From Trichosphaerium sp. ATCC 40318 (Eukaryota; Protista; Tubulinea): a stretch of 64,000 nt of DNA. The stretch spans positions 99,663 through 163,662 of the forward strand of contig JALMLS010000341.1 of assembly GCA_038496445.1 (NCBI GenBank). Direction: 5' to 3'. Shown here piece by piece: positions 19,326-62,390 of this stretch. The notes beneath the pieces are model-generated. The model saw only the letters and a list, made by a program, of their open reading frames with translations. It was not told the DNA's origin and ran no database searches. The position numbers and the translations under genes were made by a program. Within the stretch, counting starts at the first letter, position 1, and the number at the start of each line of letters is the position of its first letter.

Positions 19326-19512
19326 TAAAATAATAAAAAAACAAGAAACAATAACAATATGTCCTGCTAGCTGTGGATTGCCATCATAAGACCCTTATGT
19401 CAGATTGGTTTCCTTTTGATCTCTGCTATTGACGTTCTTGTCTCTTTCGAATGCAGAATGTTCTTATAACGGAATTACTCACTAAATTCTTATTTGTAGA
19501 ATTATTTTCTTT

Positions 19513-21780
19513 TTATTTTGTTGTAATTGATACAACCTCACTACTGGATCCTTTGGGTATTATTCTATAATGAAACAAGTACAAACATACTAGAATAACT
19601 GTCCATACAGCATTAAGCGCAAGCAACACTATACCCTACTTTTGAGGTTAAAATGTGTGCTAGAACTGAAAAGTACATACCATGTACAAAGCTACAAAAG
19701 GCATAAGTGCAGTACCGCTAGCTACTATCCAACATAAAAGTATTACAGCATAGACTAAGAAAGCACAAGATGAGATAAAGAAGAGGGTAAACAAACAAGT
19801 TGACTACTTGCCTACGCCAAGCCAGAAGCACGTGTTACCAAGTCGCCAAGGAGTGAACAATTGAATGATAGATATTGATGCTAGTATTAATGCCCATACT
19901 CCAGCAGGGACCAGTAGACCATAGATCCATGCTTTTAACAAATTTGTAAGAATTTTATAGGATTTTAAAGGTTGTACTAGGGAATGCTTCAATGTCACAT
20001 GAAGCGTCGTTTCCTGGTTGTCCTCTGAAAAAACAAACTTATTGAGTTCAAACTTTTGCTTAGATTACAGTACGTTTTTACAAATGGAGCACATCCTGAC
20101 CATTGTATAATAGGGTTAGCGTCTTCTCCTCTGTATCCTTTCATATTAACACATAAAGGGCCTGTACCGGAATCTTCAATCTCTAACACACCATATTGAT
20201 TGACGTAGTGATACTCATAACTTTTACAACCTGTTCCAAAAAAAGTCGTAAATTACAAGATGCTTTTGTTTGATGCAAAACATTAATACCTTCAGAGAAA
20301 GGACCTCCTTTGGACGATCCAATGCGATCATATGCTGCAGCTTGGAATATTGGAAACCCTTAAAAACGTGTTAAAAAGTACTGGTGTTGACAGTGAGTCA
20401 AACCTGCTCCGCCACCAGTGGCATAGTCCGAGTTTGAGCCTATTGCTATTAAAACAATAAACATTTATTTATGTCTCACCATCGTCAATTGCAAGCATGT
20501 GAGAATCACCAGATATAGCAATAAGATTTGTTACGCTACAATTCTTTATCATATTAGCAACTCTTGTTCTATCACTTGGATAACTAAACCATTTATCACC
20601 CTGCTGTCGAGTTAGATACTCGAGTGCAGGTTGTGCGTGTGAGGTAGTCAAAGTGACTCACCGCAGATGGTTTTCCTATCCATGGAATAGTATTTGCCCA
20701 GACCACCAGAGAATATGAAGAAGCTGAACACAATTCATTGTTGAACCATTGAAACTGCTCTTCACTCATGAGCGTAACTTCCGAAACTTGCTGCACAAGA
20801 AATGAACAAAACTCGGTAAGTAGTTTCCGCTAATTTTTATCGAAACTATTTTATTACCTCTGATTTTAAATCTGTTATTATAAATCTAACGTTACCAATA
20901 GTATATGCTTGGTTTATTCTTGCTTGAAGATCAGGAGCTAACAAAACATGTGTTAGTCTTTGCATTGGCAACAAAAAAGACTTACGGGCGAGTTCTGTGG
21001 GATAATGTGGAAAGTACATTCTATACGCTGACCTAGCTGCTGGTTTACTAGGCGAGCTTGAGTCAGCATTATTTGGTCCATAATCGTGGTCATCCCAAAT
21101 ATAGCTCATAGGAAGACTTTGGAATAATTCACGTTGTCTGTTTTGTTTAAAGGTAAGTTCATAAGCATCACGGAAAGCTTGAATGCTGTTTGTGGTTATA
21201 TCTGTATAATGTAGGTCACCCAAATGGATCATCAAATCAGCATTTTGATTCTTAATGGCCGAGAAAACTTCTAAACAGAAAAAATTATTTGTTTTTTGAA
21301 AACGACATGGCACGTGATTTTTTCTTTTCAGAAACTGTGTCGTACTGTTGTTTGAAGCAGCGCTAGAGCAAGATCCAAAAACAATCTTTAAATTTTGAGG
21401 ACCTTCACTAAAAGTTGAAAAAGTCCCGACTCTAGCGGTACTTGCGCCATAATAGTACCGTGAGGACGATGTTAAGTTGTGAAATGTAATCTTAAAAGGA
21501 TCGCTTGTTATCGCCGGTGCCCGTATTGGAGAAGTTAGATCCCTTGTTGAACTCAACGATAGTGTCCCTCCTTGATTACCTAACCGGTAATTTGGTAAAC
21601 AGTCAAGAAATTGGCTACAGCACAACAAGCGAAGAGGATTGGCGTACCTGAAATCACTATTGTCGCTTGGCTGTTTGTAACTCCTCCTGCCCACATGATA
21701 AAAGGAGAAACATAGCTAAATAGGCACGTGATAATAAAGAATGTAATATACATAGTGGTGTAGTGAATGAAGTATCGCAT
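19513..21780 (-). CDS. PhoD-like alkaline phosphatase/phosphodiesterase with signal peptide and C-terminal TM helices (copy 1)
   Basis: FGSCS, IHLGDLHY, IWDDHDYGPNNAD, ISGDSHMLAIDDG motifs. Confidence 0.88.
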
Positions 21781-22126
21781 GGTATGGCGGTTATGTAAAT
21801 GTCACATTTTTACTTTTATGATGTCATTAAAATGTGTCATTTTCAAAACATATGAACCCTTTTTTGGGAACCAAAACATCTACTATATTGAACTACATAA
21901 AGCAGGCACCTTAGTTTGTACGCTTCAATATTGTTATCCGGTGAAATCGTCGGACCACAAGTCCGAAATATTACAGGCAATCTTTGTTGTTGCCGAGTAG
22001 TGTGTTCCAGAAAAGAATATTCATCCTGTGATATGGGTTTAGATTTGCGAAGGCTAGGTAAAGTTCTTGATGTCGCGTACTTGTGATTACACTGTAAATG
22101 TTGCATATATTCTGGCTCCCTCTTCA

Positions 22127-22536
22127 GGTAGAGTAGGGTGGGTTTGACGCTTTTTCGATTTTAATTATGTTGACCAAAAACACAGGGTGAACTCAAACAT
22201 GGAATCTATGGTGTTGGTAGAGTGGGTTTGACACTTTTTCGATTTTAATTATATTGACCAAAAACACAAAAGACGGAAGTGTTTCGGTAGACAGCATTTG
22301 AGGTGTTGACGATTTTCGCAAATATCGATTAAGGGAAAGGGAAAAAAAAACCATCTGGGTAGAGGGGGTTTGAGACTTTTTCGATTTTAACCATGTTGAC
22401 CAAAAACACAAAAGACAGAAGTGTTTCGCTAGACAGTTTTTTACTAGGTGGGAGTTGAGACTTTTTCAAACAATAATTGAGAGTGTGTTTATTATTATAT
22501 GTAACAGCGAGAGGGAGTTTGAGGCTTTTTTGAAGG
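22127..22536. repeat. Imperfect direct-repeat array: three 55-80 bp copies plus shorter core copies
   Basis: GGTAGAG(N)GGGTTTGA(C/G)(A/G)CTTTTTCGATTTTAA..ATRTTGACCAAAAACACA at 22127-22184, 22216-22294 and 22358-22436; core copies near 22437-22468 and 22508-22536. Confidence 0.9.
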
Positions 22537-22649
22537 TAAATAAACAATTTTTTTTATTAATACCAAGTAGATAGCGCTGTTGTGTTGTGATCTATCCAGT
22601 GAAGCGCAAGCGAGCCGTTTCCGTGAGTAAACAGTTTTGTGATTGATCT

Positions 22650-23468
22650 CCGCGAAGCCCATGCGAGCGCAGTGCCCTCCAGTTGCCTAGGTAAACCTTG
22701 AGCGGGTATCAAGGTTTAGCGAAGGTAGACCGCACTCTTGTTAAAAATCACATGACTTTTTCTGTTTTTTTACTAGAGGGAAGTTGACACTTTTATATTT
22801 GTGATTCAGAGTGAGGTTATATTATTTCTCCGCATGCGGAATTTTGCAGATTACGCCCTTTGACTACCCGCTAGCAACGCCGAGTCTTCATAATTTTGTG
22901 GGCGCTGGTGATACGGGGTCTATGAAGTGTGCTTTTGTCGTAGATGTATGCTTTGTATCTCGCGCTGGGAAAAAAATTTGTGCCCACGCGCTTTTGAGCT
23001 CCAAACCCTCACCAGATACGTTTATTTCGCCAATGAAGAGCGCTCCTTCAAGGAAGTATGCGGGATCGGCACTGTGCGACGAGAAAATTTTGCTATTTTT
23101 TCGTGTCGTTGATAACAAGCGTTTTAAAGCTTCTTTTACGTAACAAACCACATAATAAACGCTTTTCAAGCTGTAATTGCGTGTCAATAAAATAGTGACA
23201 CGGTAAAAAAGGCAAACATGTGCTTAATCGCAATAAACGCGTTGTTTCTACCGTTTCCAAGCATTCTCGTTCCCGTAATTGCGTTTAAACCTCATCAAAA
23301 CTGATTAAGTGAGCATTTTGTCAAAATGACTTAACGAATTCCGCTACACCCTTAACACACTTCCCACCCTATAGCAAAACGTGTGGTACATTAAACGCCA
23401 AACCTTGCTACCAGAGCAAGGTTGTGTCTAGCTAACTCAGGGGTAGTGGCTCGCTTGGGCTTCGCTGG
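22650..23468. repeat. Pair of ~72 bp imperfect inverted repeats, each with a GCGAAGC motif and an AACCTTG-loop-CAAGGTT hairpin
   Basis: ~22650-22721 aligns with the reverse complement of ~23396-23468. Confidence 0.8.
22888..23295 (-). CDS. Hypothetical small spliced protein inside the repeat island; exon structure uncertain
   Basis: ATG 23295 MRFKRNYGNENAWKR splices via GT-AG in frame into ORF 22888-23187. Shares an upstream TGCTCACTTAA motif with the neighbouring nuclease gene. Confidence 0.4.
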
Positions 23469-23591
23469 TATTGGTTATCTTGTATGCTGTTTGATTGAAT
23501 AGTGTAGAAATTTACTAAAATACAATGATTGATAAATGTAATACTGTCTAAATACACTTAAGCAAGTGCACTTACACAGTTCCCCACCCTA

Positions 23592-24122
23592 TTAAGTTGG
23601 TACGCTTAATACAGTTTACCACCCTATAGCAAAAACTACTCGTTGTCAAATAATAAAAAGTTTATTCGTTTTTAGCGAAAATACAGTCACGCATTCTGCG
23701 CCAGGCACCATAGTAAAATGCAAAATGGCCTTCGCAATATCCTCGGTGCTCGCACTTTCTGCGCGAATTATTAACGTAATTCGGCTCTAACACAATATGA
23801 TCTGGGTTCGTGCATGCCTTACAATGGCACAAATGCGAGGCGTCAACCTCGCAACGCTTTAGCGTTGGATAATACAAATAATACCCTAGTTCATCACGGT
23901 CACGCAGAGTGATGCCTTTTTGCGTGTATAACACGTAATGAGCTAGATTGAATTTCATATTTTTACATCCGTTCTGGAATGTTGCATAGATATAACCTGA
24001 ATGATTTATAGAGCCTCTCTTACACACACGGCATCCAGTTTCTGTTGTTTTAAGTTAGTTTTGGTGTGTTTTGTTGTTAAGTTGGTACGCTTAATACAGT
24101 TTCCCAACCTATAGCAAAAACT
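23592..24122. repeat. 46 bp direct repeats bracketing the nuclease coding exon
   Basis: TTAAGTTGGTACGCTTAATACAGTTT(A/C)CCA(C/A)CCTATAGCAAAAACT at 23592-23637 and 24077-24122; partial copies at ~23352-23380 and ~23570-23595. Confidence 0.92.
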
Positions 24123-24164
24123 GTAAAGAAAGGTACCTGGTTTTATCTCTTCTCCATAGCGCAT
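23662..24164 (-). CDS. His-Cys box / His-Me finger endonuclease (I-PpoI-like), two exons, ~135 aa
   Basis: Exon 24164-24137, GT-AG intron 24136-24042 with CTAAC branch site, exon 24041-23662: MRYGEEIKPETGCRVC..SGY..DASHLCHCKACTNPDHIVLEPNYVNNSRRKC..C..H..C. Confidence 0.85.
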
Positions 24165-24284
24165 TGAGTGTAACTTTAAGTGAGCAATGTCCCAAGGCTA
24201 CTCTTCAGGAGTTACTCTCGTTTAAGTAAGGTAGGCGTTAAGTCAATTTCGCTGACTCATCACTCAAGATATCCCTGTTTTACA

Positions 24285-26056
24285 ATGAGTACTACTGTAG
24301 TGCTGTTTTTATGTATTCTTTCCCTTGCGAACAGTGTGAAGCTTAAAATAGACAGTTCAGACGCATCTTTAGCAACAAACCGACAATTGAACGCTATGCC
24401 AAATAGCCAGCTGTACATAGTTTCCAACGAACTCTCCAAACGTATGTACATTGTGGAATGAAAAACAACTTACTTCTTTAGTACCAATTCAAATTGATGC
24501 CGAAGGAGATTGCGATGAATCATGCGTCTTTGATGTTAGAATTGAGGAAGAAAACAACTCATGGTAAGTTGACATTTGTTGATACACTTATTAAGTTGAC
24601 GAAGGAACTATGATGTTCCGCCTACCCCACACCAGAGAGCACAATACTCAACCTACGTCCCTGAAGAAAGTCTGTATGGTAATACACATAATCAGAGAGC
24701 CTATAAGAGCGGTCAATACTATGTTATAGAGCCAAGCATCTCAAAAGAGTTCGCCAGTGTGATAATATCAATGAAACATCCAAATGGTTCACGGTAAGTT
24801 TTGAAGTTTCTACTATGTAATTCTTACAAAGTAGTATGTCCGGCGTACAACCGAAAGAGATACTTATTGTAAGAAAGAAAGCGTATGACGAAAAATTAAA
24901 GGTGGTTGAGCAGAACGTTGCCTCAAAAAGACAAGAGAAACATGTGTATGAGATCGAATACAAACGAAACAAGACTCAGATATCAGAAGCATACGAGCCC
25001 TTACGCCTTCACCCAGAGATTTTCACGTTTTCAAGTGATTTCTTGGATCCTATTCTAAAGGCCAAACTTGAAAGTAAGCAGCTAGATCTTGACGTTGTAG
25101 CTGAATCAGGTATTTTTGGGCTACCAATGTTCACGCCTGAATTTGTTGCGAAATTCCTTGATGAAATAGCAAACATTAAGGCTTCCAATGTTGAGACTTC
25201 TCGTCCAAATAGGTAAGTGCCAACGCTAAAACTAATCTAATCCTGTATAGTATGAATAATTATGGAGTGATACTGGACTACTTAGGATTCGAACGCTTCT
25301 TTGACGTAAGAAAAAATAAGAAAATACTTGCTAACACTTTGCCAGGAATTTATAGATCAAGTTATACAACCTATCGCAGAACATTTATTCCCTGGCACGA
25401 ATTAATCCGAAATGTATCTAATACGAACATAGAGTGGATATCACCTTTCTTTAAACTTGATAGTGTACAGACAAAGTACCGCTTAAACGTACTTAGACTG
25501 TTTTTAGCACCGTGCTTTTATAGTAGAATATGAGATTGGGAATGATGAAGATTTGGACTTTCATATGGATCAAGCAGAGGTAGTTTGCGCAATACTATTG
25601 ATAAGTGCTTATATTATTTGTTTAGATTACACTCAACCTATGCCTTGGCGAAGATTTCACAGGTGGTGAAGTGTACTTTAAAGGAGTCAGGTAATCATTT
25701 ACACTTCGTAAGTGGTTCTAAGTTCTGTTAGGGATACACCACTCGAGAAAGTTGAGAACTTTGAGTATCCACATACTGTAGGTAGAGGTATATTACACCT
25801 AGGTAAGATTGTTTTTCAGGAAAGCTTGTTCTCTTAAAAATAAACAGGACAACACTGGCATGGCGCTAAAAAAATCAAAAGTGGAAAGCGATACAACCTG
25901 ATATGTAAGTAGTACTTACGTTTTTCCGTTGTTTATTCTTGTGAAGTATGGTCAAAAAGCTCAAGCTATCGAGAGAGCGCAGCTGAAAGAGTCCTCAGAG
26001 CTCACAATGCCATCAACTTTGAAAACGATTTTTCCTCGCCAAAAATAGAATTATGA
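24285..26056 (+). CDS. 2OG-Fe(II) dioxygenase (OGFOD2/PLOD C-terminal-like) with signal peptide and KIEL C-terminus
   Basis: RPNSMNNYGVIL, DFHMDQAEITLNLCLGEDFTGGEVYF, HLGQHWHGAKKIKSGKRYNLI (HxD...H...R). Confidence 0.85.
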
Positions 26057-44863: not shown

Positions 44864-47170
44864 AATGCTACTTGTTATTGCAGTGGTTTCGCTTCTCGTT
44901 ATTGTACTATGGATCATTTCTCTGTATAGAAAGCGTATGTACGCAGGAATACCACCATCAGACTACGGTAACGCTATCTAAGTGTAAATAAAAGCAATAA
45001 AACTCTAACAGTTATTAGGCGCACCAGTAGTGGGTAGAACGCCCAAGTTATTGACACAAGACCATATAAGCTTTTCAAGGATTCGTTTGAGCGCCTAGGA
45101 CCTGAGTTTGCAACTAACCTGTTCCTAACAGATTGTGTTGTAACTACGAACACAAAATTCGCTTTCCGTGGAAAGGTACTGCTAACAGACAAGTTTAATT
45201 CCGTCATTCCTAAAAGTGACACATTTCTTGAAGTTGGAAAAAGTGCAAGTGTTTTTTCTCATCACCATCAATATGCTTGTTATTACCCTACCGAACTATT
45301 AGTAATATAGTACCGACTTTTTAGCTACGATAGGGTTAGATTGTCTTTGGTGTATGAGAAAACAACGATTGCACTTTTTCCAACTTCAAGAAATTCTTCT
45401 GTCTTTTCTTTTACCCGAATGAAGCTTACATACGTTGAAATAGAATCTCGATGTTGGTTGGCCAAAACATTTCTTCAAGTTGATTGGTCATGAATCGCAC
45501 TCAGCGTGTCCTCTTGGGAAGCAACACAGGAGTCAACGCCAATTACTCAATTTCGCATTCACAACAAAGTAATACACTAGTTTCATGATGTAAGCGGCTT
45601 AGGTACTAAACTAAGATTTAGAGCACTCCGTGCATCTGTTCCTAGAGTATACGCCATCGCTGAAAAAATATTCGATGAATGGGGAGAAAAAACAGGTTTC
45701 TTTGAAGTGTTACCTGCATGCAGAGTCCTGACGTTTAGCATTGTGAGTATAGTTGGCAGTGTAGACTTGTCGTTAGTCTGATATTATATCACAGGCCAGC
45801 CAAGTGCTTTTGGGTGGAAACTTGTCACGAGAAGAGATTGACAAAATGCTAGCACAATTTGTAATTTGGGTATGTTTGTTGAAGAAAAATGTTTCAACAG
45901 ACTTGATCATGTGTTGTGCTTACTTTTTTGTTGTATAGAACGTTGGTTTTGGTGCCTTTTTGTTTCCATATGATGTTCCAGGTACAGATTTTGGTAAAGC
46001 TATGGATGCAAGACGTAAAATGCAAAAAAAGATAGGCGAAGCTATTGATTCAAAAAAACTGTTACCAGCTGTATGCAATTCACCTTTTCTAGCAGTTCAA
46101 ACAGTCGTTCTTACTTCGCTTTAGGACAGAGAAAAAACCTCAATTTTAGACAACCTACTGGCAGCTGTGTACGATTAGAAAAAATTACTTAATCTCACTT
46201 TATTACCAGGGATGAAGCCGGTAATAAACTGTCTCGTCAAGCGTTGCTTGACCAGAGTCTAATGCTACTATTTGCTGGTATGACACTTGCACAAGATTAG
46301 TGCTCACGTTGATTAATAGGATACGATACTACATCTGCTTCTTTATCTTCTATACTATGGTATTTGGCCAGTAATCCTGAGCATATCTCAATGCTATACG
46401 AAGAAGTAAAACACCTTGATAAGCCACTCGATGAAGGTGACTATGATGCAATACGTGAATTGCCAATGCTAGATGCTACAGTTAAAGAGGTAACAAGACT
46501 CCCTTTTAGACAAGTTTGCTTGATGGCTATTGAATGACATAAGCTGTCCTTTGTAATCATTGCCCTGGGCGACCTCTAGTCAGGTCCTTTCGTATAATGT
46601 ATCAACTTACCATCCATAGGTTCTTCGTTTAACACCTCCTTTGGTCGCAATTGGTAGAACAGCAAAGAAAGACGTAAAGACACCTAATGTTCGTTGACGT
46701 TAGTTAAATTGTTTTCTCACTCTTTTACACAGGGAAGCACTGTTCCAGAATCATGGTCTGTTCAAGTTCCTATCAACCATATCCATCATGATCCAAAGAA
46801 TTTTAAGGACCCTGAAAAAGTGAGCATTCAGCTTTTTTTTCTTTTTTGTAATAACATGCGACTGTAGTTCAACCCACAACGTTTCATTGATAACAAAATT
46901 TCGAATGATATCCACGCACCTTATGGTGGAGGAAGCCGCATGTGTTTGGGTACGTTCTTAAGGGTCTTGAAATGGCTCTGTTTGCTGACTTGTTGATTTT
47001 TACTAATGCACCTTGTCTTTGTTAGGATACAAGCTTGCAAACTTGGAAATGAAGATTTTTATCCTTAGAGTAGTATGCAAATTTTCTGATCTTACTCACC
47101 AGAATCACGTCGATTTTTACAAACTAGTCAACACACATAATTTTGATGTAAAATTGACTAAAAGGGAATA
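44864..47170 (+). CDS. Cytochrome P450; C-terminus irregular
   Basis: N-terminal anchor, LLFAGYDTT (I-helix), KEVLR (ExxR), DPEKFNPQRF, PYGGGSRMCLG heme motif. Confidence 0.9.
45223..45394. repeat. Intronic ~170 nt foldback hairpin
   Basis: ATTTCTTGAAGTTGGAAAAAGTGCAA (45223-45248) is the exact reverse complement of 45369-45394; imperfect pairing continues inward. Confidence 0.9.
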
Positions 47171-49341: not shown

Positions 49342-50434
49342 TGTGAATTAGAGTTAAACAAAGTGAAAATACCTTGTTGACCAAAATTGGTCAACAATAG
49401 TCATGTGGTTTTTAGTGTCTCGAGATAAGTCGTAAAAGGGACGACCGTCTATTGGTCTATGAAGAAGGACAGAACAAAACTTTGCCTTGAAGTGATCTTA
49501 ACCAGTTAACAGTACAAATGGACACCTACCAAGCGATAAAGATATCTACAAAAAAAATATGTGAATTCAACATGACATTATCGATTTGGACGCACAAGTG
49601 TACGTACAGTGGCCACTTCTTTCAAACACATAGCAATGATCACGAGGTTAGATAATGTGATGGAAAAGTATGCAACTGGCAAAAAAGAACTGACAATCGA
49701 GTTATGCGTCAAATATTCTACAAACGAAGTACTATAATTCGTAGATGGTATAACGTGAGGGAGAAGGAAAGGTTTGGTACAGCAATGCTCAATTGTAAGG
49801 GGTTTTTACTTATGTCAATAGTGAACATCAAGGACATTAGAGCCATCCTTGTATGCTATTAGTACATTGATTTCGAAGTGTAATGGTAAAAACAGAAAAG
49901 GATTTGTGGAATACTGAGAAACCTTTTTTTTTATAATACCTGCTGCATTCATAGGTTGGAATATACTACCAATAGCCTATCTGAATCATTAAACTCAATG
50001 TACAAAGCTTGCAGGAATGGACTGAGTTCTCCACGTGGTATGTTTTTAGGTATTAATACTATGGAAAGGCAAAGTTTGCGTGGAATCAACGCAGTCTAAT
50101 GTCTAGACACCGTTTGCAATTTGTAGTTTGCTCGTTAAACAACACTTACAAATACCATTGTGTACACCAGACACCTCGTCTACTAAACACTCACAAATTG
50201 AATATTACCAAACTCTTTTTAACACTGAAGCAAGCATGCAAGTTCAAGGTTAAGCTTATTTTATGCAATATAGTATTATCGGGGGTAGCTCCAATAGTTG
50301 TAGGTAGTTCCCAATAAAGCCCATAAGGGCCGAGGATCGCTCCATGTTTGGGAAAACTTAACGCTTTTCAATGAAATACATACCATAAATGTAAAAAAAC
50401 ACGAACTAAAAGGCTCACGTGACCTCTTGAACCT

Positions 50435-52697
50435 ATGTATATTACGTTCATTATTATCGCGTGTTTGCTGAGCAATGTTTCACCTTTTATAATGTGGGCA
50501 GGAGGAGTTACAGACAGCCAAGCGACAATAGTGATTTCAGGTACGCCAATCCTCTTCGCTTGTTGCTGTAGCCAATTTCTTGACTGTTTACCAAATTAAC
50601 GGCTAGGTAATCAAGGAGGGACGCTATCCTTGAGTTCGAGAGCAGATCTAGCGTCCCCAGCACGTGCATCGGCAATAACAAGTGATCCTTTTAAGATTAC
50701 ATTTCAAAACTTAACAGCTTCATCACGATACTATTATGGCGCAAGTACCGCTAGAGTTGGGACTTTTTCAACTTTTGGTGAAGGTCAACAAAATTTAAAG
50801 ATAATTGTTGGCTCTTGCGCTGACACCGCTTCAAACAACAGTACGAAACACCACTTTTTCAGGAAAAAATCGCACGTGTTTTCGGTTTTTTTGACAAATA
50901 CTTTTTTAGAAGTTTTCTCGGCCATTAAGAATCAAAATGCTGATTTGATGATTCATTTGGGTGACCTACATTACAAAGATATAAGCACAAACAGCATTCA
51001 AGCTTTCCGTGATGCTTATGAACTTACCTTTAAACAAAACAGACAACGTGAATTATTCCAAAGTCTTCCCATGAGCTATATTTGGGATGACCACGATTAT
51101 GGACCAAATAATGCTGACTCAAGCTCGCCTAGTAAACCAGCAGCTAGGTCAGCGTATAGAATGTACTTTCCACATTATCCTACAGAGCTCTCTCGTAAGT
51201 CTTTTTGTTGCCAATACAAAGACTAACACATGTATTTTTAGCTCCTGATCTTCAAGCAAGAATAAACCAAGCATATACTATTGGTAACGTTAGATTTATA
51301 ATAACAGATTTAAGATCAGAGGTAATGAAGTTGTTTCAGAAACGTAGTGGAAATACGTAAATGAGTTTTGTTCATTTTTGCTGCAGCAAGTGTCAGAAGT
51401 TGAGGTCATGAGTGAAGAGCAGTTTCAATGGTTCAACAATGAATTGTGTTCAGCTTCTTCATATTCTCTGGTAGTATGGGCTAATACTATCCCATGGATA
51501 GGAAAGCCATCTGCGGTGAGTCACGTTTAGTTCCATATACCTTCTTTTTTTCTTCGAAAAAATATGCTATTGAGAAAATCTAACTCGTCAGCAGGGCGAT
51601 AGTTGGCTTGGTTATACAAGTGATAGAATAAGAGTTGCTAATATAATAAAGAATTGTAGTGTAACAAATCTTATTGCTGTAGCAGGTGATGCTCACATGC
51701 TCGCAATTGATGATGGTGAGCCTTTAATAACTGTTTATTATTTTTAATAGCAATAGGCTCAAACTCGGACTATGCCACTGGTGGCGGAGCAGGTTTGACT
51801 CACTGTCAACACCAGTACTTTTTAACAAGTTTTAAGGGTTTCCAATATTCCAAGCTGCAGCATATGATCGCATTGGATCGGCCAAAGGAGGTCCTTTCTC
51901 TGAAGGTATCAATGTTTTACATATTCGAATTATTTTCTCAGCAACACGATTGACTTTATCGTAACAGGTTGTAAAAGTTATGAGTATCATTACGTCAATC
52001 AATATGGTGTGTTAGAGATTGAAGATTCCGGTACAGGCCCTGTATGTGTTAAGATGAAAGGATACAGAGGAGAAGACGCTAACCCTATTATACAATGGTC
52101 AGGATGTGCTCCATTTGTAAAAACGTACTGTAATCTAAGCAAAAATTTGAACTCAACTAGTTTTTCAGAGGACAACCAGGAAACGACGCTTCATGTGACA
52201 TTGAAGCATTCCCAAGTACAACCTTTAATAATTTTGTTGTAATCTTAAAAAATTCTCACTAATCTGTTTATAGCATGGATCTATGGTCTACTAGTCCCTG
52301 CTGGAGTATGGGCATTAATACTAGCATCAATATCTATCATTCAATTTTTCACTCCTTGGCGACTTGGTAACACGTGCTTCTGGCTTGGCGTAGGCAAGTA
52401 GTCAACTTGTTTACTTGTTTTCTCACCTTATACTTTCTTAGTATACGCTGTAGTACTTGTATGTTGGATAGTAGCTAGTGGTGCTGCGCCTATCCCTTTC
52501 TTACCTTTGTTTATGGTATGCGCATTTTAGTTTTAAGTACATCAGAAATTAGTTTTTTGCCTCTTACTCAAAAGTAGGGTATTGGATTACTTGCGCTTGA
52601 TGCTGTATGGACAGTTATTCTAGTATGTTTGTACTTGTTTCATTATAGTATAATATCCAAAGGGTCCAGTAGTGAGCTTAAACCAATTACAAAATAG
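50435..52697 (+). CDS. PhoD-like phosphatase (copy 2), inverted paralog of 19513-21780
   Basis: Near-identical exons and introns; HLGDLHY, WDDHDYG, GDAHMLAIDDG. Confidence 0.88.
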
Positions 52698-52899
52698 CCA
52701 TAAAAAATAAAAAAAGAGTTTGTCTACTTGATTCTCACAATTTTCTGGTGTAAGTTTGCAATATCTTGTATTCAGCAAAAGTGTCAAGTGAATATCAAGC
52801 GCACTTGTTGTGTATTTTAGCACTGCCTCAATACGAGCATTCAATTGTCACAGTGCACTTTGTGTCTAAATCATCAACAACAGCAAGTATATGTTATAT

Positions 52900-57043: not shown

Positions 57044-57820
57044 TTGCGTTGAATTGTAAGTTGTAATTGGGACTGTTACTTAAGTGATGACTTAAAGTTG
57101 CAAAACTCATGGGATGGCTAAGAAGGTTGAAGACATCCTTAGTTGACCAAGTAAAATGCAGAGGAGGCGGCCATCATGATTACCAATAAACAAACCAACC
57201 TTATTGACTATGACTTGCAATCCTGTGAAATAAATAGCTATTAAAAACCATTGTATCGCAATTAGATGTGAGAATCGCCTGGAAAGGGTTTTTGAGTCAC
57301 GCTTTCAACTCATACCAATTGAAATTTGGGTTGCATGTGAAAATGGAACAAGCATTTAAGAAATATTGTTATATTCATGTTTGAATTAACAGGTACATGC
57401 GTTAAAGAATTGGCTGGTGTTCAAAAAATAGGTCTTCGATTACCAACGTCGTTTTGTTAATATGGTTGACTTTCCAACATCGCACGTATTTCTTTTTAGA
57501 TGCGCGGCGAACATATTTTATTTCGGTTTTTGGAGGTCATGTCAGCTTATACTGACGAAAACGAAGTAATTGTGCCAAGTATCTTATTTTCATTAGGCAT
57601 TTGTGGAACAGTAAGACCACTTTTCAAATTATCCAAAACATATATTGTCGCCACCTCTTAATAGAAACATTCACTTGATTTGGCTATCGTATGGGTGGTT
57701 ATTACGTCACGTGTTCATTTAAAAACAGGTTAAGCAAACGGTTTTCAAACGCATGAATTATTTGTGCACTCCCCACATACCTACCTTCCGTGTACAGCGC
57801 TGCCTATAATTTGCAGTTCC

Positions 57821-58956
57821 ATGGGCCATAAAAGCAGTAAAGAAGTAAAGCCCACAGCTAACACTCCAGGTAGCTAAACTGATTTTTCTTCTCTATTGCT
57901 CTTTTATTTAACACAGTTGCTGTCGATTTTGATTAACTAACAGCGCACATAGCGCCTACAAAACCTACCAATGTTATCAAAGAGGCTCCAAAAGAATAGT
58001 AAGACACTCATTTCATGTGTATCTATTTACTGACACTTCTTGTTAACCAAAGCGATTATTTATTCAACATAGCACCACTTGGAGATTCTGGTGTTGGGAA
58101 AAGTAGTCTCGTGCTTAGATTCGCTGATGACACATTTACGGAAGCATTCATATCCTCCGTTGGCGAAGAAGGAAAAGTACACAGTTTTACAAGACAAAAA
58201 CTCCAACATGTTTTTACCCTTTGTGTAACTACTTTTTTGTTTGAATTAAATCACGTGACAATGGTTTGTCTTTAACTTTCTACGTTTAGAAAATAAAAGA
58301 TATCAAGATAGAAGACGAAAAGATTCTTAGGCTACATGTTTACGATATTTGTGGTACGCTTCTCTATGGCACTGTACTACCCTTTAACACACGTTTTTTT
58401 AAGGCCAAGAAAGACGTTTTTTAGGCAGATGCAATCCCTATAGAGTTTATCATGGTGTTATGATAACTTACGACATAACACGCCAAGAGACTTTTGATGA
58501 TTTGGTCAAGTGGATGAATGAGCTTGAAAGATATGCGGGAGACGACCTCCAAAAAATACTTGTGGGAACTAAATGCGATCTAACAGATCGCCGTGTTATT
58601 GATACTGATACTGCCAAGGTAAACAAACTCAGTAATGCTTGGCATCATCTGTGTTTTCATTTTGTTTAACACTCACAAACTGTTTCAGGCGTTCGCTGAT
58701 ACTCACAAGATGGAGTTCTTAGAGACATCATCCAAGGACTCAATAAATGGTATGATCTTTATCTACGCATGAACTAGTTTAATAATTTGATTTTGTAGTG
58801 ACAGAAGCCATTGAATTATTGTCATCTAAAATTATGGCAAACATTGTGAAAAAGCAAGAAGAGCAAAATCAGAATAACGAGTCGGAACAAAGCACAAGTG
58901 GATCCAATCGTACCAAAAAAAAAAAAAAAACAAAAAAAAAGAGCAGTAAGCAATAA
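57821..58956 (+). CDS. Divergent Rab1-like small GTPase with an N-terminal MG motif and no C-terminal Cys
   Basis: KEYDYLFN, GDSGVGKSSLVLRFADDTF, DICGQE, YDITRQETF, LVGTKCDL, FLETSSK; ends KKKKKTKKKSSKQ. Confidence 0.88.
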
Positions 58957-60316
58957 ACAACATAAAAATAAACTCAGATACACTTGTGGAGTCATGTTTT
59001 TTTGGTTAGTTGTAGCAACACCAGTATCAGTACTTGGTGGTTGTGCATCGAACATTGGATCATACATACTTATAGCACTTTTTCATTAGCATCATGGCGC
59101 AATTGACAATGAAAAAGCTTCTCCTTTACAACAAGCTTAAAAAATAAAGTATTATACAGCATCCTCAATACCGGATGTTTGAAAGCTGGTACCCTACAAC
59201 TTTGTGAACTATTGTCTGTTTCATTCAAGTTTTGAGACAGACTGACTTTTAGCAAAAAAAATCCAGTTCCTGCCCGATCTGTCAGATCTGACGGATTTGA
59301 CACTTCTGGCAGATCTTGCAAATTGTAATTTTTTAAATGTGAGCTACCCTGTCGAGTGAATCCAACCGTTTCAAACCCACGTGATTTAACAAACCTCATA
59401 GCAACTTTTTTATTTACATATTTTGACACCTAGCAGCATTTACAAAGCCTACAGGTGGTGTTTTGGGGCGGTTTTGACTTTGTTAAACCTTCATTGCTAT
59501 TTGGATGCTACCATGGCACTTCTGTTAGCGTGGTAGGCGCTAGCGTAGCGCTAGTAAGTTATACATGTACGTTGATTTTTTGAAGCAAAACATACTGCAA
59601 ATAGTGTTTGAGGCATTCATACCGTGTTTGGCAGTAATGCGATAGCTTTGTAGGACATCATACCTTTTTAATTCGATTTCTAGCTCATGAGCACTTCTGT
59701 GGTTTGATCGTACCGTGTACAGTTTGCGTAGGTAAAATACTGAGATCATCTTCCATCTATTGAAACTGACATCGAAAAGTTTGTTATTACTTAAGGTACG
59801 TAAGTCACACTATGAAGGACAACATAGTAACGTAAATAGTTCACATTGTGATAGATCTACATCATTTGACAGAAGTGTCAATTTTTGCTAGATCTGCTAA
59901 AAGTGCTACTTTCTAGAAAATATTAGTAAAACTTGAATGACACAGACAATATTTTCTATGAGGTTTTCATGTTATAACACCAGTTGATGTTGTGAGAGTT
60001 AATACCAAGTGCCTTGCTAGAGTACGTATCTATTGTGAGCTTCCTGTCATGTATCTGGTTTTCGCTAATCGTTTACCCAGCTTATTTGAAAAGCACATGA
60101 TCATGGTGTCATAAACACAAATTTGATTTGGGTTTTGGAGCTTTTTGTCGCCACCTCTAAATACACATTTATTTGATTGGATTTCGTGTGGGCTTGTATC
60201 GCGTCACGTGTTCATTTAAAAAAATTTCGCTAACCCGAAAAGCTTTATTTGTTTGCTCACTTCTCTCAGCCTACCCTTGAAAGACACCTACTGCGTTGCC
60301 TATAATTAGCAGAGAT

Positions 60317-61380
60317 ATGGGCGATAAAAGCAGTAAAGAAGCAAAACCCACAACTAAAACTCCAGGTAGCTAAAACTGAATTTCTCTTCTCTTCTATTGT
60401 TCGTTTATTGACGATCGGTTGTTACCTGTCGATTTTGATTAAATAACAGGTTACGTATCCCGCGACCATACAGAGCCTCTAAAAGAATAGTAAGACACTC
60501 ATTTCATGTGTATTTCTATTTACTGCCACTTCTTGTTAGCCAAAGCGATTTCAACATAGCACTGATTGGAAATCGTGGTGTTGGGAAACGTAGCCTTGTA
60601 CATAGGTTCGTTGATGACACCTATACAAATCAGTACCCCGAAGGTGAAGAAAAAGTACGCAATGACTCCAAAGGTGAAGAAAAAGTACGCAATGACAAGC
60701 GCAAAACAACTTTCCACTGCTGTTTGCTCAGACAAAAAAACACGTGTTAAAACTATCAATTGATTTTTAATGCAATCGCTAACTGCTACATTTAGATAAG
60801 TATAAAAGAAATCAATATAAAGGGTGAAAAGATTAGGCTACATGTTTGCGCGAATCAAAGTATGCTTCTCTACAACACTATCCTTTATCATAATGTATAT
60901 TTAGGCCGTCCATCCCAAATGATTAACGCCCACACTCCCTATAGAGGTTATCATGGCATTTTGTTATTGTTTGACATAACACGCCGTGAATCTTTTCATT
61001 ACAGTATGTGGAATTGGCTGCAAGAGATTCAAAGATATGGGAGAGAAGACGCACAAACTATACTTGTCGGAACTAAATGCGATCTAACAGCAAACCGTGT
61101 TATTGGTTATGATACTGCCAAGGTAAACAATGTCTAATAATTGGCAACATAGTGTTTTCATTTGTTTAAAACTTGCTTACTTAAAACTCATACCAACTTT
61201 TTTCAGGAGGTAGCTGACGGTTTAGAGATGTCGTTCATAGAAACATCAGCTAAAAACTCAACAAATGGTATGAAGTTACCTATGCATGAACTAGTTTAAT
61301 AATTTGATTTTGTAGTGACAGAAGCCTTTGAGTTATTGGTCTCTAAAATTATGGCAAAATATAGGAAAAAACCAAAATAA
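60317..61380 (+). CDS. More divergent tandem paralog of the Rab1-like GTPase
   Basis: MGDKSSK, GNRGVGKRS, LVGTKCDL, FIETSAK; same intron positions and upstream sequence as the 57821 copy. Confidence 0.8.
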
Positions 61381-61805
61381 CAGCTTTTTACAAAATACAA
61401 AAAGTTGCCACAACAAATTACTAGAGAATTTTTCGCTAAGCAGTTGAATGTGCTACGGCGTAAGCCCTACATGCCTTGAATCTACACGGTAAGTATAAGA
61501 GCTTAATATACAACTGTAGCCGTGAGAAAAAATAAATACGTTTAACTGTTTTAATGGTATGACGTTATTGTAAAATGTGAAAATCTCCTAGCTAGGTATT
61601 TGTTGTTCATCGCATGTACCTTAAAAGTGTATAAAGAGTAGTAGTGCATCGAACCTGAGCGTACACACTAAAATGATAGTTGTGGCTCCGCTAAAAACGT
61701 TAAGTTCAGCTCATTGATCTTTATTAGCGATAGAAAACCCAGCTAAACGCTTTTCATTTGTGTAGTGCGCTTTTTCCAAAAATGTTTACAGTTTTTTTTC
61801 TCTTT

Positions 61806-61912
61806 CTAACTTATGCAACATCCCAAACAGCCAAAAATGATACTCACATACTACATGCACATTGCGAATACAATACATCGTTTTTGGCTGTTTGGGATGT
61901 TGCATAAGTTAG
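61806..61912. repeat. Perfect 32 bp inverted repeat (hairpin)
   Basis: CTAACTTATGCAACATCCCAAACAGCCAAAAA (61806-61837) versus its exact reverse complement at 61881-61912. Confidence 0.92.
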
Positions 61913-62390
61913 TGAACAAAAATGTTTTCTAAACTGCGTTGTTTGCCACCTCACGTCAGGGATAAGTAGTACATCACTGTTTAAGAGGATTTGGCCTATT
62001 CATTTGGCAGTAAAAGGTGTTGATGCTCTTAAATAAGGAATTAAAAGTTCTTTTTTTGCTGAAAAGATGACGACACATATTTTCTATGATAATTACGCAT
62101 AATGTACATATTGTGCATCTCTTTTAAGATCCTCCCCTTGAAATACAAACCTTAACCTATCATGTACGGCAGTTTCAGGAGAGTAGCTGACTGCTGTGTG
62201 GTTGACACATTTTTTACTTTTTCATCAACTGCTTAGAGAAAAATTCTCTAGTAGATCAGAAGAGTACAACCATACCAAGCCCAAACAAAAAAGACAGTGG
62301 AGTAAAATAAAATAAACTTTTGGTTGAAGGTTTTTTTGTTTATTTTATTGTGAACAACGTTAATGACGTTTTTGCTTGAGTCTTTCTTTT

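Follow-up and report, generated by a model that had tools for sequence, protein, structure and literature searches.

A predicted His-Cys box nuclease gene lies within two mirror-image motif arrays in a protist intergenic region

The DNA analyzed here (the window, 64,000 nucleotides in all) is eukaryotic in character, with short exon-like open reading frames (ORFs) that carry LRR_6, MORN, Sel1, U-box, DWNN, topoisomerase I, and PurK domains. The presence of a purine gene of the PurK type speaks against an animal host, and one LRR ORF has its nearest relatives (41% identity) in transcriptomes of marine protists. A scan for bacterial promoters and terminators, irrelevant for a eukaryotic window, returned matches at the level of shuffled sequence. 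Most of a 2.5-kb gap between two divergently oriented genes is occupied by an island of ~2 kb, in which an intact I-PpoI-type nuclease gene lies within two arrays of a short repeated motif that mirror each other. The locus comprises the following features, with motif copies numbered m1 to m10 from left to right.

20846-21755, minus strand: left neighbor, the 5' part of a PhoD-like phosphatase gene, with its likely start codon at 21753
22127-22536, plus strand: left outer array with motifs m1 to m5, including three direct units of 84 nt
22596-22616, plus strand: an additional copy (21 nt) of the module's first block, with 90% complementarity to 23448-23468
22652-22721, no strand assigned: left 70-nt module with a 9- to 10-bp hairpin
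22766-22797, plus strand: inner left motif m6, with a T-run before it, 86% identical to m4 over 29 nt
22798-23347: unique center, stop free on both strands over about 300 nt, without gene support
23348-23379, minus strand: inner right motif m7
23396-23465: right 70-nt module, an inverted copy of 22652-22721
23558-23637, minus strand: motifs m8 and m9 in tandem units of about 35 nt; the downstream 46-nt repeat is 23592-23637
23661-24010, minus strand: predicted His-Cys box nuclease gene, from TATA box to AATAAA
24077-24122, minus strand: upstream 46-nt direct repeat with motif m10
24285-25216, plus strand: right neighbor, with a signal-peptide-like first ORF from the ATG at 24285, a GTATGT at 24442, and an OGFOD2-like exon ORF at 24836-25216

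The neighboring genes were searched by reference, exon ORF by exon ORF and without a joined gene model, and the search with the PhoD-like neighbor gave a top identity of 45%. The two right-hand ORFs presumably belong to one gene. An initial annotation of this DNA had placed the island between ordinary host genes, and the PhoD-like gene on the minus strand and the OGFOD2-like exon on the plus strand agree with that placement. The left neighbor is part of an inverted segmental duplication of 2.3 kb (19502-21755 versus 50433-52714, 86.5% identity) that carries two PhoD-like phosphatase genes. Similarity between the copies stops at the start codon, their upstream regions are unrelated, and nothing resembling the island was found upstream of the paralogue. 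The island is thus not part of a conserved promoter of that gene, although the paralogue site is not a true empty site.

The ORF at 23662-23958 on the minus strand matches Pfam family PF05551 (E 4e-12; 46.8 bits versus a cutoff of 27) over profile positions 13 to 120 of 131. Read from the ATG at 23958 to the stop codon at 23662-23664, it encodes 98 amino acids, or 121 if translation begins at a GTG at 24027; the N-termini of the nearest relatives agree with a start at the ATG. On the same strand, a TATAAAT sequence (24004-24010) lies 46 to 52 nt upstream of the ATG, and an AATAAA (23661-23666) overlaps the stop codon. With its own TATA box, ATG, and AATAAA, the nuclease resembles an ordinary, expressible nuclear gene. 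An upstream ORF of 10 codons begins at 23985-23987 on the minus strand, 29 nt before the nuclease ATG, which its end overlaps; this short ORF may precede the transcription start.

An alignment of the ORF with 25 relatives (26 members) has 11 invariant columns, and the predicted protein retains every one of them. Residues S64, H65, H77, E81, and N86 are invariant in this alignment and align to I-PpoI positions 94 to 126, so that the I-PpoI-group signature listed by Kojima and Bao (PMC9587614) is present as the equivalents of S97, H98, H110, E114, and N119. Nucleases of this group have eight His/Cys ligands that form two zinc sites; the candidate ligands C67, H68, C72, H77, C92, C98, and C115 are kept in the island protein, and an invariant H30 lies near the equivalent of the N-terminal Cys of I-PpoI. 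An AF2 model (pLDDT of 85.5) has I-PpoI as each of its top four PDB matches, with probabilities of 0.92 to 0.99 and a TM score of only 0.36 over 85 columns. Since phage HNH models match the predicted fold at TM scores of 0.44 to 0.51, at least as well as I-PpoI does, assignment to the I-PpoI group rests on the sequence signature and not on the fold. Read in this way, the ORF is predicted to be a His-Cys box nuclease of the I-PpoI group with intact catalytic and putative zinc residues, and both the family match and the invariant columns bear out the initial call of an intact nuclease of this type. The protein is a new and divergent representative of an established family, and its surroundings correspond to neither of the settings described for such nucleases.

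Exact look-ups of both start variants of the nuclease gave no match, and neither did a word search. An exhaustive protein search against 1.8 billion representatives returned 347 relatives at E<=0.001, none of them above 45% identity except for one spurious match; this top match, of 1335 amino acids, is a bacterial repeat protein and was discarded. The closest relatives are small proteins of 95 to 180 amino acids from metagenomes and read assemblies. In one of them (P0003; L002 418-929 and L003), the domain forms one exon of a gene that is spliced, and the short introns on either side of it have nearly the same 3' ends. The repeats around P0003 had been considered as a parallel to those of the island and were dropped as such, since they are these intron 3' ends. 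Another relative (P0008; L005 1-3524, on a 26.8-kb metagenome contig) lies in one spacer of three paralogous tandem segments of 300 to 380 nt, and the next spacer does not contain it. Two further related genes from a single metagenome (P0014 and P0007, on L006 and L033) lie on dense contigs of unannotated small ORFs that are possibly viral, and one of these contigs has a SET-domain gene.

The initial annotation had placed two small minus-strand genes in the island, of which only the nuclease gene stood. The second, at 22888-23187, starts with a TTG, has no in-frame ATG, and has no match in Pfam, PHROGs, NCBIfam, PADLOC, or the PDB. Neither of the stop-free stretches of the center (22811-23143 on the plus strand and 22888-23187 on the minus strand) has a family match. 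The center as a whole holds no ATG-initiated frame of note and gave no family or structure match, and codon scores fail to set it apart from chance.

The repeated motif has a 9-nt G-rich core and occurs 10 times in 22127-24122. Six copies lie in the left arm on the plus strand (core starts at 22134, 22218, 22360, 22445, 22509, and 22774) and four in the right arm on the minus strand (23363, 23583, 23618, and 24103), so that each arm is pure with respect to strand. Searches for the motif used short IUPAC patterns and a position-count matrix made from the repeat copies themselves. With at most one mismatch allowed, the 9-mer core has eight matches in the window, six of which fall inside the 2 kb of the island; 4.3 would be expected for all 64 kb. 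Within the left arm, three direct units of 84 nt begin at 22132, 22216, and 22358 and are 89 to 94% identical (E 1e-24). The right arm contains, in addition to the tandem m8 and m9 units, a pair of 46-nt direct repeats, 485 bp apart, which at 96% identity (E 9e-14) is the most similar repeat pair of the island. The interval between the members of this pair exactly accommodates the nuclease cassette, with its TATA box at one end and its poly(A) signal at the other. These identities show recent local copying within each arm, as read from the sequences. The island repeats do not recur elsewhere in the 64-kb window, which contains a single copy of the island.

Both arms have the same order of parts, from inner motif to module to outer motifs. 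The left and right modules (22652-22721 and 23396-23465), compared in inverted orientation, are 76% identical (E 6e-6), with a global alignment z score of 16.7 against shuffled sequences; at 45.5 bits, this inverted match is outscored by one other locus in the window (49 bits). The module contains a hairpin of 9 to 10 bp; at two of its pairs the copies carry different bases that are complementary in both. The arms are alike only in the motif cores (9 to 12 nt) and this one module, and their outermost motif copies have the core alone in common. In the left-right comparison, the outer spacers, the halves of the center, and the sequence past the arms all gave z scores of about 0. The symmetry of the arms is therefore real but patchy. 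The oppositely oriented motif arrays and the mirrored hairpin module of the initial annotation are both present, and its arm symmetry exceeds that of shuffled sequence in the module and not in the spacers or the center. Cores and module that are kept amid randomized spacers indicate some constraint on these pieces, as expected of iterated binding sites, rather than a young inverted duplication. The iterated protein-binding sites proposed at the outset are consistent with this constraint, while binding itself is a conjecture.

Hallmarks of introns, mobile elements, and viruses were sought by several routes. No Rfam family, and in particular no rRNA or group I intron model, was found in the window by searches at gathering thresholds or at E<=10, a tRNA scan of the window found none, and protein-family searches detected no transposase or other element gene in the island. 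The initial annotation had likewise seen no rDNA, ribozyme, or transposase. At none of the offsets tried did a left motif copy paired with a right one show a target-site duplication (TSD), and none flanks the 46-nt repeats. The best flank match in this search, of 7 nt, cuts into a core and is at chance level for about 7000 trials. The inverted pairs in the island, namely the 70-nt module (76%) and a 21-nt pair (90%), are both internal to the motif arrays. Viral contigs scanned for the module block (20 matches) and the motif (4 matches) showed no extended similarity, and these numbers are near chance by a rough estimate of the size of the collection. A protein scan of viral contigs for the nuclease found none. 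The sole metagenome match has a GC content of 0.535 and was deemed a chance match, and matches to phage families were weak, at E 0.01 or worse. The GC content of the island itself is 0.40, compared with 0.32 to 0.45 across the 1-kb blocks of the window, and thus shows no compositional anomaly.

The most probable reading, to which we give a probability of roughly 35%, takes the island as a small selfish DNA element, whether still resident or in decay, which lacks a transposase of its own and whose nuclease acts on its own repeats. The motifs would serve as sites of protein binding or cleavage, and the nuclease would break the DNA inside its own repeats. Repair by recombination among the repeat copies, through either unequal exchange or the re-insertion of a one-repeat circle, would keep or copy the 485-bp cassette, and the same repair would account for the amplified tandem and inverted copies. 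Kojima and Bao (PMC9587614) proposed such breaks and exchanges in the direct repeats of KolobokP elements; for the island, cleavage of the repeats by the nuclease is purely conjectural.

Several observations argue for a selfish element: the nuclease is intact, its cassette fits exactly between near-identical 46-nt repeats, the motif switches strand between the arms while the order of parts is kept and cores and module are conserved, and the PhoD paralogue has no such sequence upstream. That no relative exceeds 45% identity is as expected for a fast-evolving selfish gene. On the other side stand the lack of a transposase or any other element gene, of terminal inverted repeats with a TSD, and of a second copy in the 64 kb. 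The arms share little, the viral and metagenome scans found no relative, and the composition is like that of the host. The expression signals are of ordinary host type and would also fit a domesticated gene. A more specific form of the selfish-element reading, which we regard as rather improbable, is a nuclear homing-type element outside rDNA that has neither intron nor transposase, whose His-Cys box nuclease would cut its own array of target-bearing repeats, the gene thereby being copied by repeat-mediated repair and able to persist and spread. If true, such an element would be a eukaryotic counterpart of the free-standing homing genes of phages and of the "induced unequal crossover" of KolobokP.

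A different account, doubtful but deserving serious consideration, leaves the nuclease as an unrelated neighbor and takes the two modules as divergent paralogous genes for a small RNA of ~85 to 110 nt, the left on the minus strand and the right on the plus strand. Here the motif would be a lineage-specific upstream element with a C-rich core and an A/T-rich tail, and its other copies would drive short transcripts. Upstream elements of small-RNA genes also include the plant USE and the animal PSE. The restriction of conservation to the module and the motif cores agrees with such genes, as do the two compensated hairpin pairs. On the strands named, the two copies share a closed fold of 25 pairs with four double-sided changes and five G-U pairs, which make the fold strand specific, and the inner motif ends 20 to 48 nt ahead of it. 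A precedent exists in DUSE, a C-run promoter element located about 60 nt upstream of noncoding RNA genes in Dictyostelium (PMC7919456). Genes of the DUSE type and the island have in common a short C-rich element before a conserved, possibly structured segment of 70 to 85 nt, with several sites clustered together, but the island has no match to a known RNA family and its spacing is not fixed. The inner motif lies 25 nt from the module in one arm and 55 nt in the other, and the outer core lies 117 versus 133 nt away. Short inputs gave no Rfam match even at E 10, and the tRNA scan was negative. Folding energies do not surpass those of shuffled sequences (z of -1.6 to +0.6), and the observed covariation, which comes from two sequences only, was reached by 33 of 500 shuffles. 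Most of the other motif copies are followed by T-runs within 30 to 45 nt and by no recognizable RNA. T-runs after each module favor transcription in the opposite direction, so that the RNA strand given above is itself tentative. Should the modules prove to be small-RNA genes, they would establish a new RNA, together with its promoter element, from a lineage that has received little study.

The island might also be a host regulatory region, a reading that we think unlikely. It would then be a homotypic cluster of sites bound by a single DNA-binding protein, formed by local tandem and inverted duplication upstream of divergent genes, with the nuclease as a domesticated or orphan gene. Its position in the 2.5-kb gap between two divergent genes suits this view, as do its host-like composition, the normal TATA box and AATAAA of the nuclease gene, and the lack of element hallmarks. 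In opposition, the motif is absent upstream of the PhoD paralogue and of all other genes in the window, and a regulatory origin leaves unexplained both the 70-nt module with its compensated hairpin and the near-identical repeats that bracket the cassette.

The remnant of an integrated virus or plasmid suggested by the initial annotation, with iterons and a hairpin as its replication origin, is very improbable. Iterated motifs in both orientations and a hairpin would befit an origin, and the relatives of the nuclease on dense metagenome contigs of unannotated ORFs could be viral. However, the island has no replication, capsid, or integrase gene and no GC anomaly, none of the viral contigs has the motif, the module, or a close nuclease, and the phage-family matches do not improve on E 0.01. 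The "origin-like structure" of that annotation comes down to a single hairpin of 9 to 10 bp. A classical homing element, that is, a nuclease gene in an rDNA group I intron, would explain membership of the I-PpoI group and is refuted at this locus, since no rRNA or group I intron model was found in the window at any threshold and the gene lies between protein-coding genes with signals of Pol II type.

To our knowledge, the described settings of His-Cys box nucleases are two, the group I introns of nuclear rDNA and the KolobokP transposons of animals. An intact His-Cys box nuclease gene in a protist nuclear genome, equipped with Pol II signals of its own and flanked by repeats but lacking both intron and transposase, would be a third, and would offer a simple case of how a nuclease gene alone can persist. 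I-PpoI and its relatives in nuclear rDNA group I introns (His-Me finger group 12) resemble the predicted island nuclease in being small single-domain proteins with an SHLCH...NP.H...E....N..R..C signature. The island gene differs in that it lies outside an intron and outside rDNA, encodes 98 rather than about 160 amino acids, and is equipped with a TATA box and a poly(A) signal of its own. I-PpoI is the best match among solved structures, and the identity of the island nuclease to it is limited to about 33 residues.

[quoted passage not shown] Like the island, they carry on the complementary strand a small gene for an I-PpoI-like nuclease with direct repeats on either side, and the mechanism proposed for them, in which the repeats are broken and then exchanged unequally, could also operate at the island. 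In contrast to KolobokP, the island has no transposase, no TSD, and no inverted termini of its own, its repeats are 46 nt rather than 450 to 660 bp long, and its host is not an animal. Foldback or MITE-type elements are comparable in another respect, in that their arms consist of degenerate direct motif copies inverted around a unique center, to which the island adds its inverted 70-nt module. They differ from the island, whose arms share little beyond the cores and for which neither termini nor a TSD was found. The free-standing homing genes of phages (the HNH_3 or I-HmuI group) provide a parallel for a small nuclease gene that stands alone between other genes, but the signature of the island nuclease is that of the eukaryotic I-PpoI group and its setting is a nuclear genome with introns.

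Several other features of the window were recorded. The ORF at 1561-2811 on the minus strand is stop free over 416 codons, has a low-complexity composition rich in Gln, Asn, and Gly, and has no Pfam match. A MITE-like structure of 835 bp at 61419-62253 has 29-nt terminal inverted repeats (97% identity), a TA at both ends, and a central hairpin with 36-nt arms (61806-61841 and 61877-61912, 97%). One 10-mer occurs at only four sites in the window. The first (22098-22107) is at the island's left edge, the second (23979-23988) lies in the nuclease gene leader, and the other two (61812-61821 and 61897-61906) fall one in each hairpin arm of the MITE-like structure; the pairwise E value of 1.7 is at chance level. 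The island and this structure show no significant similarity, with matches at chance level. Elsewhere, a direct duplication of 1.2 kb (57645-58841 and 60145-61358) has about 70% identity, and an imperfect palindrome of 186 nt at 45223-45394 is 70% self-complementary.
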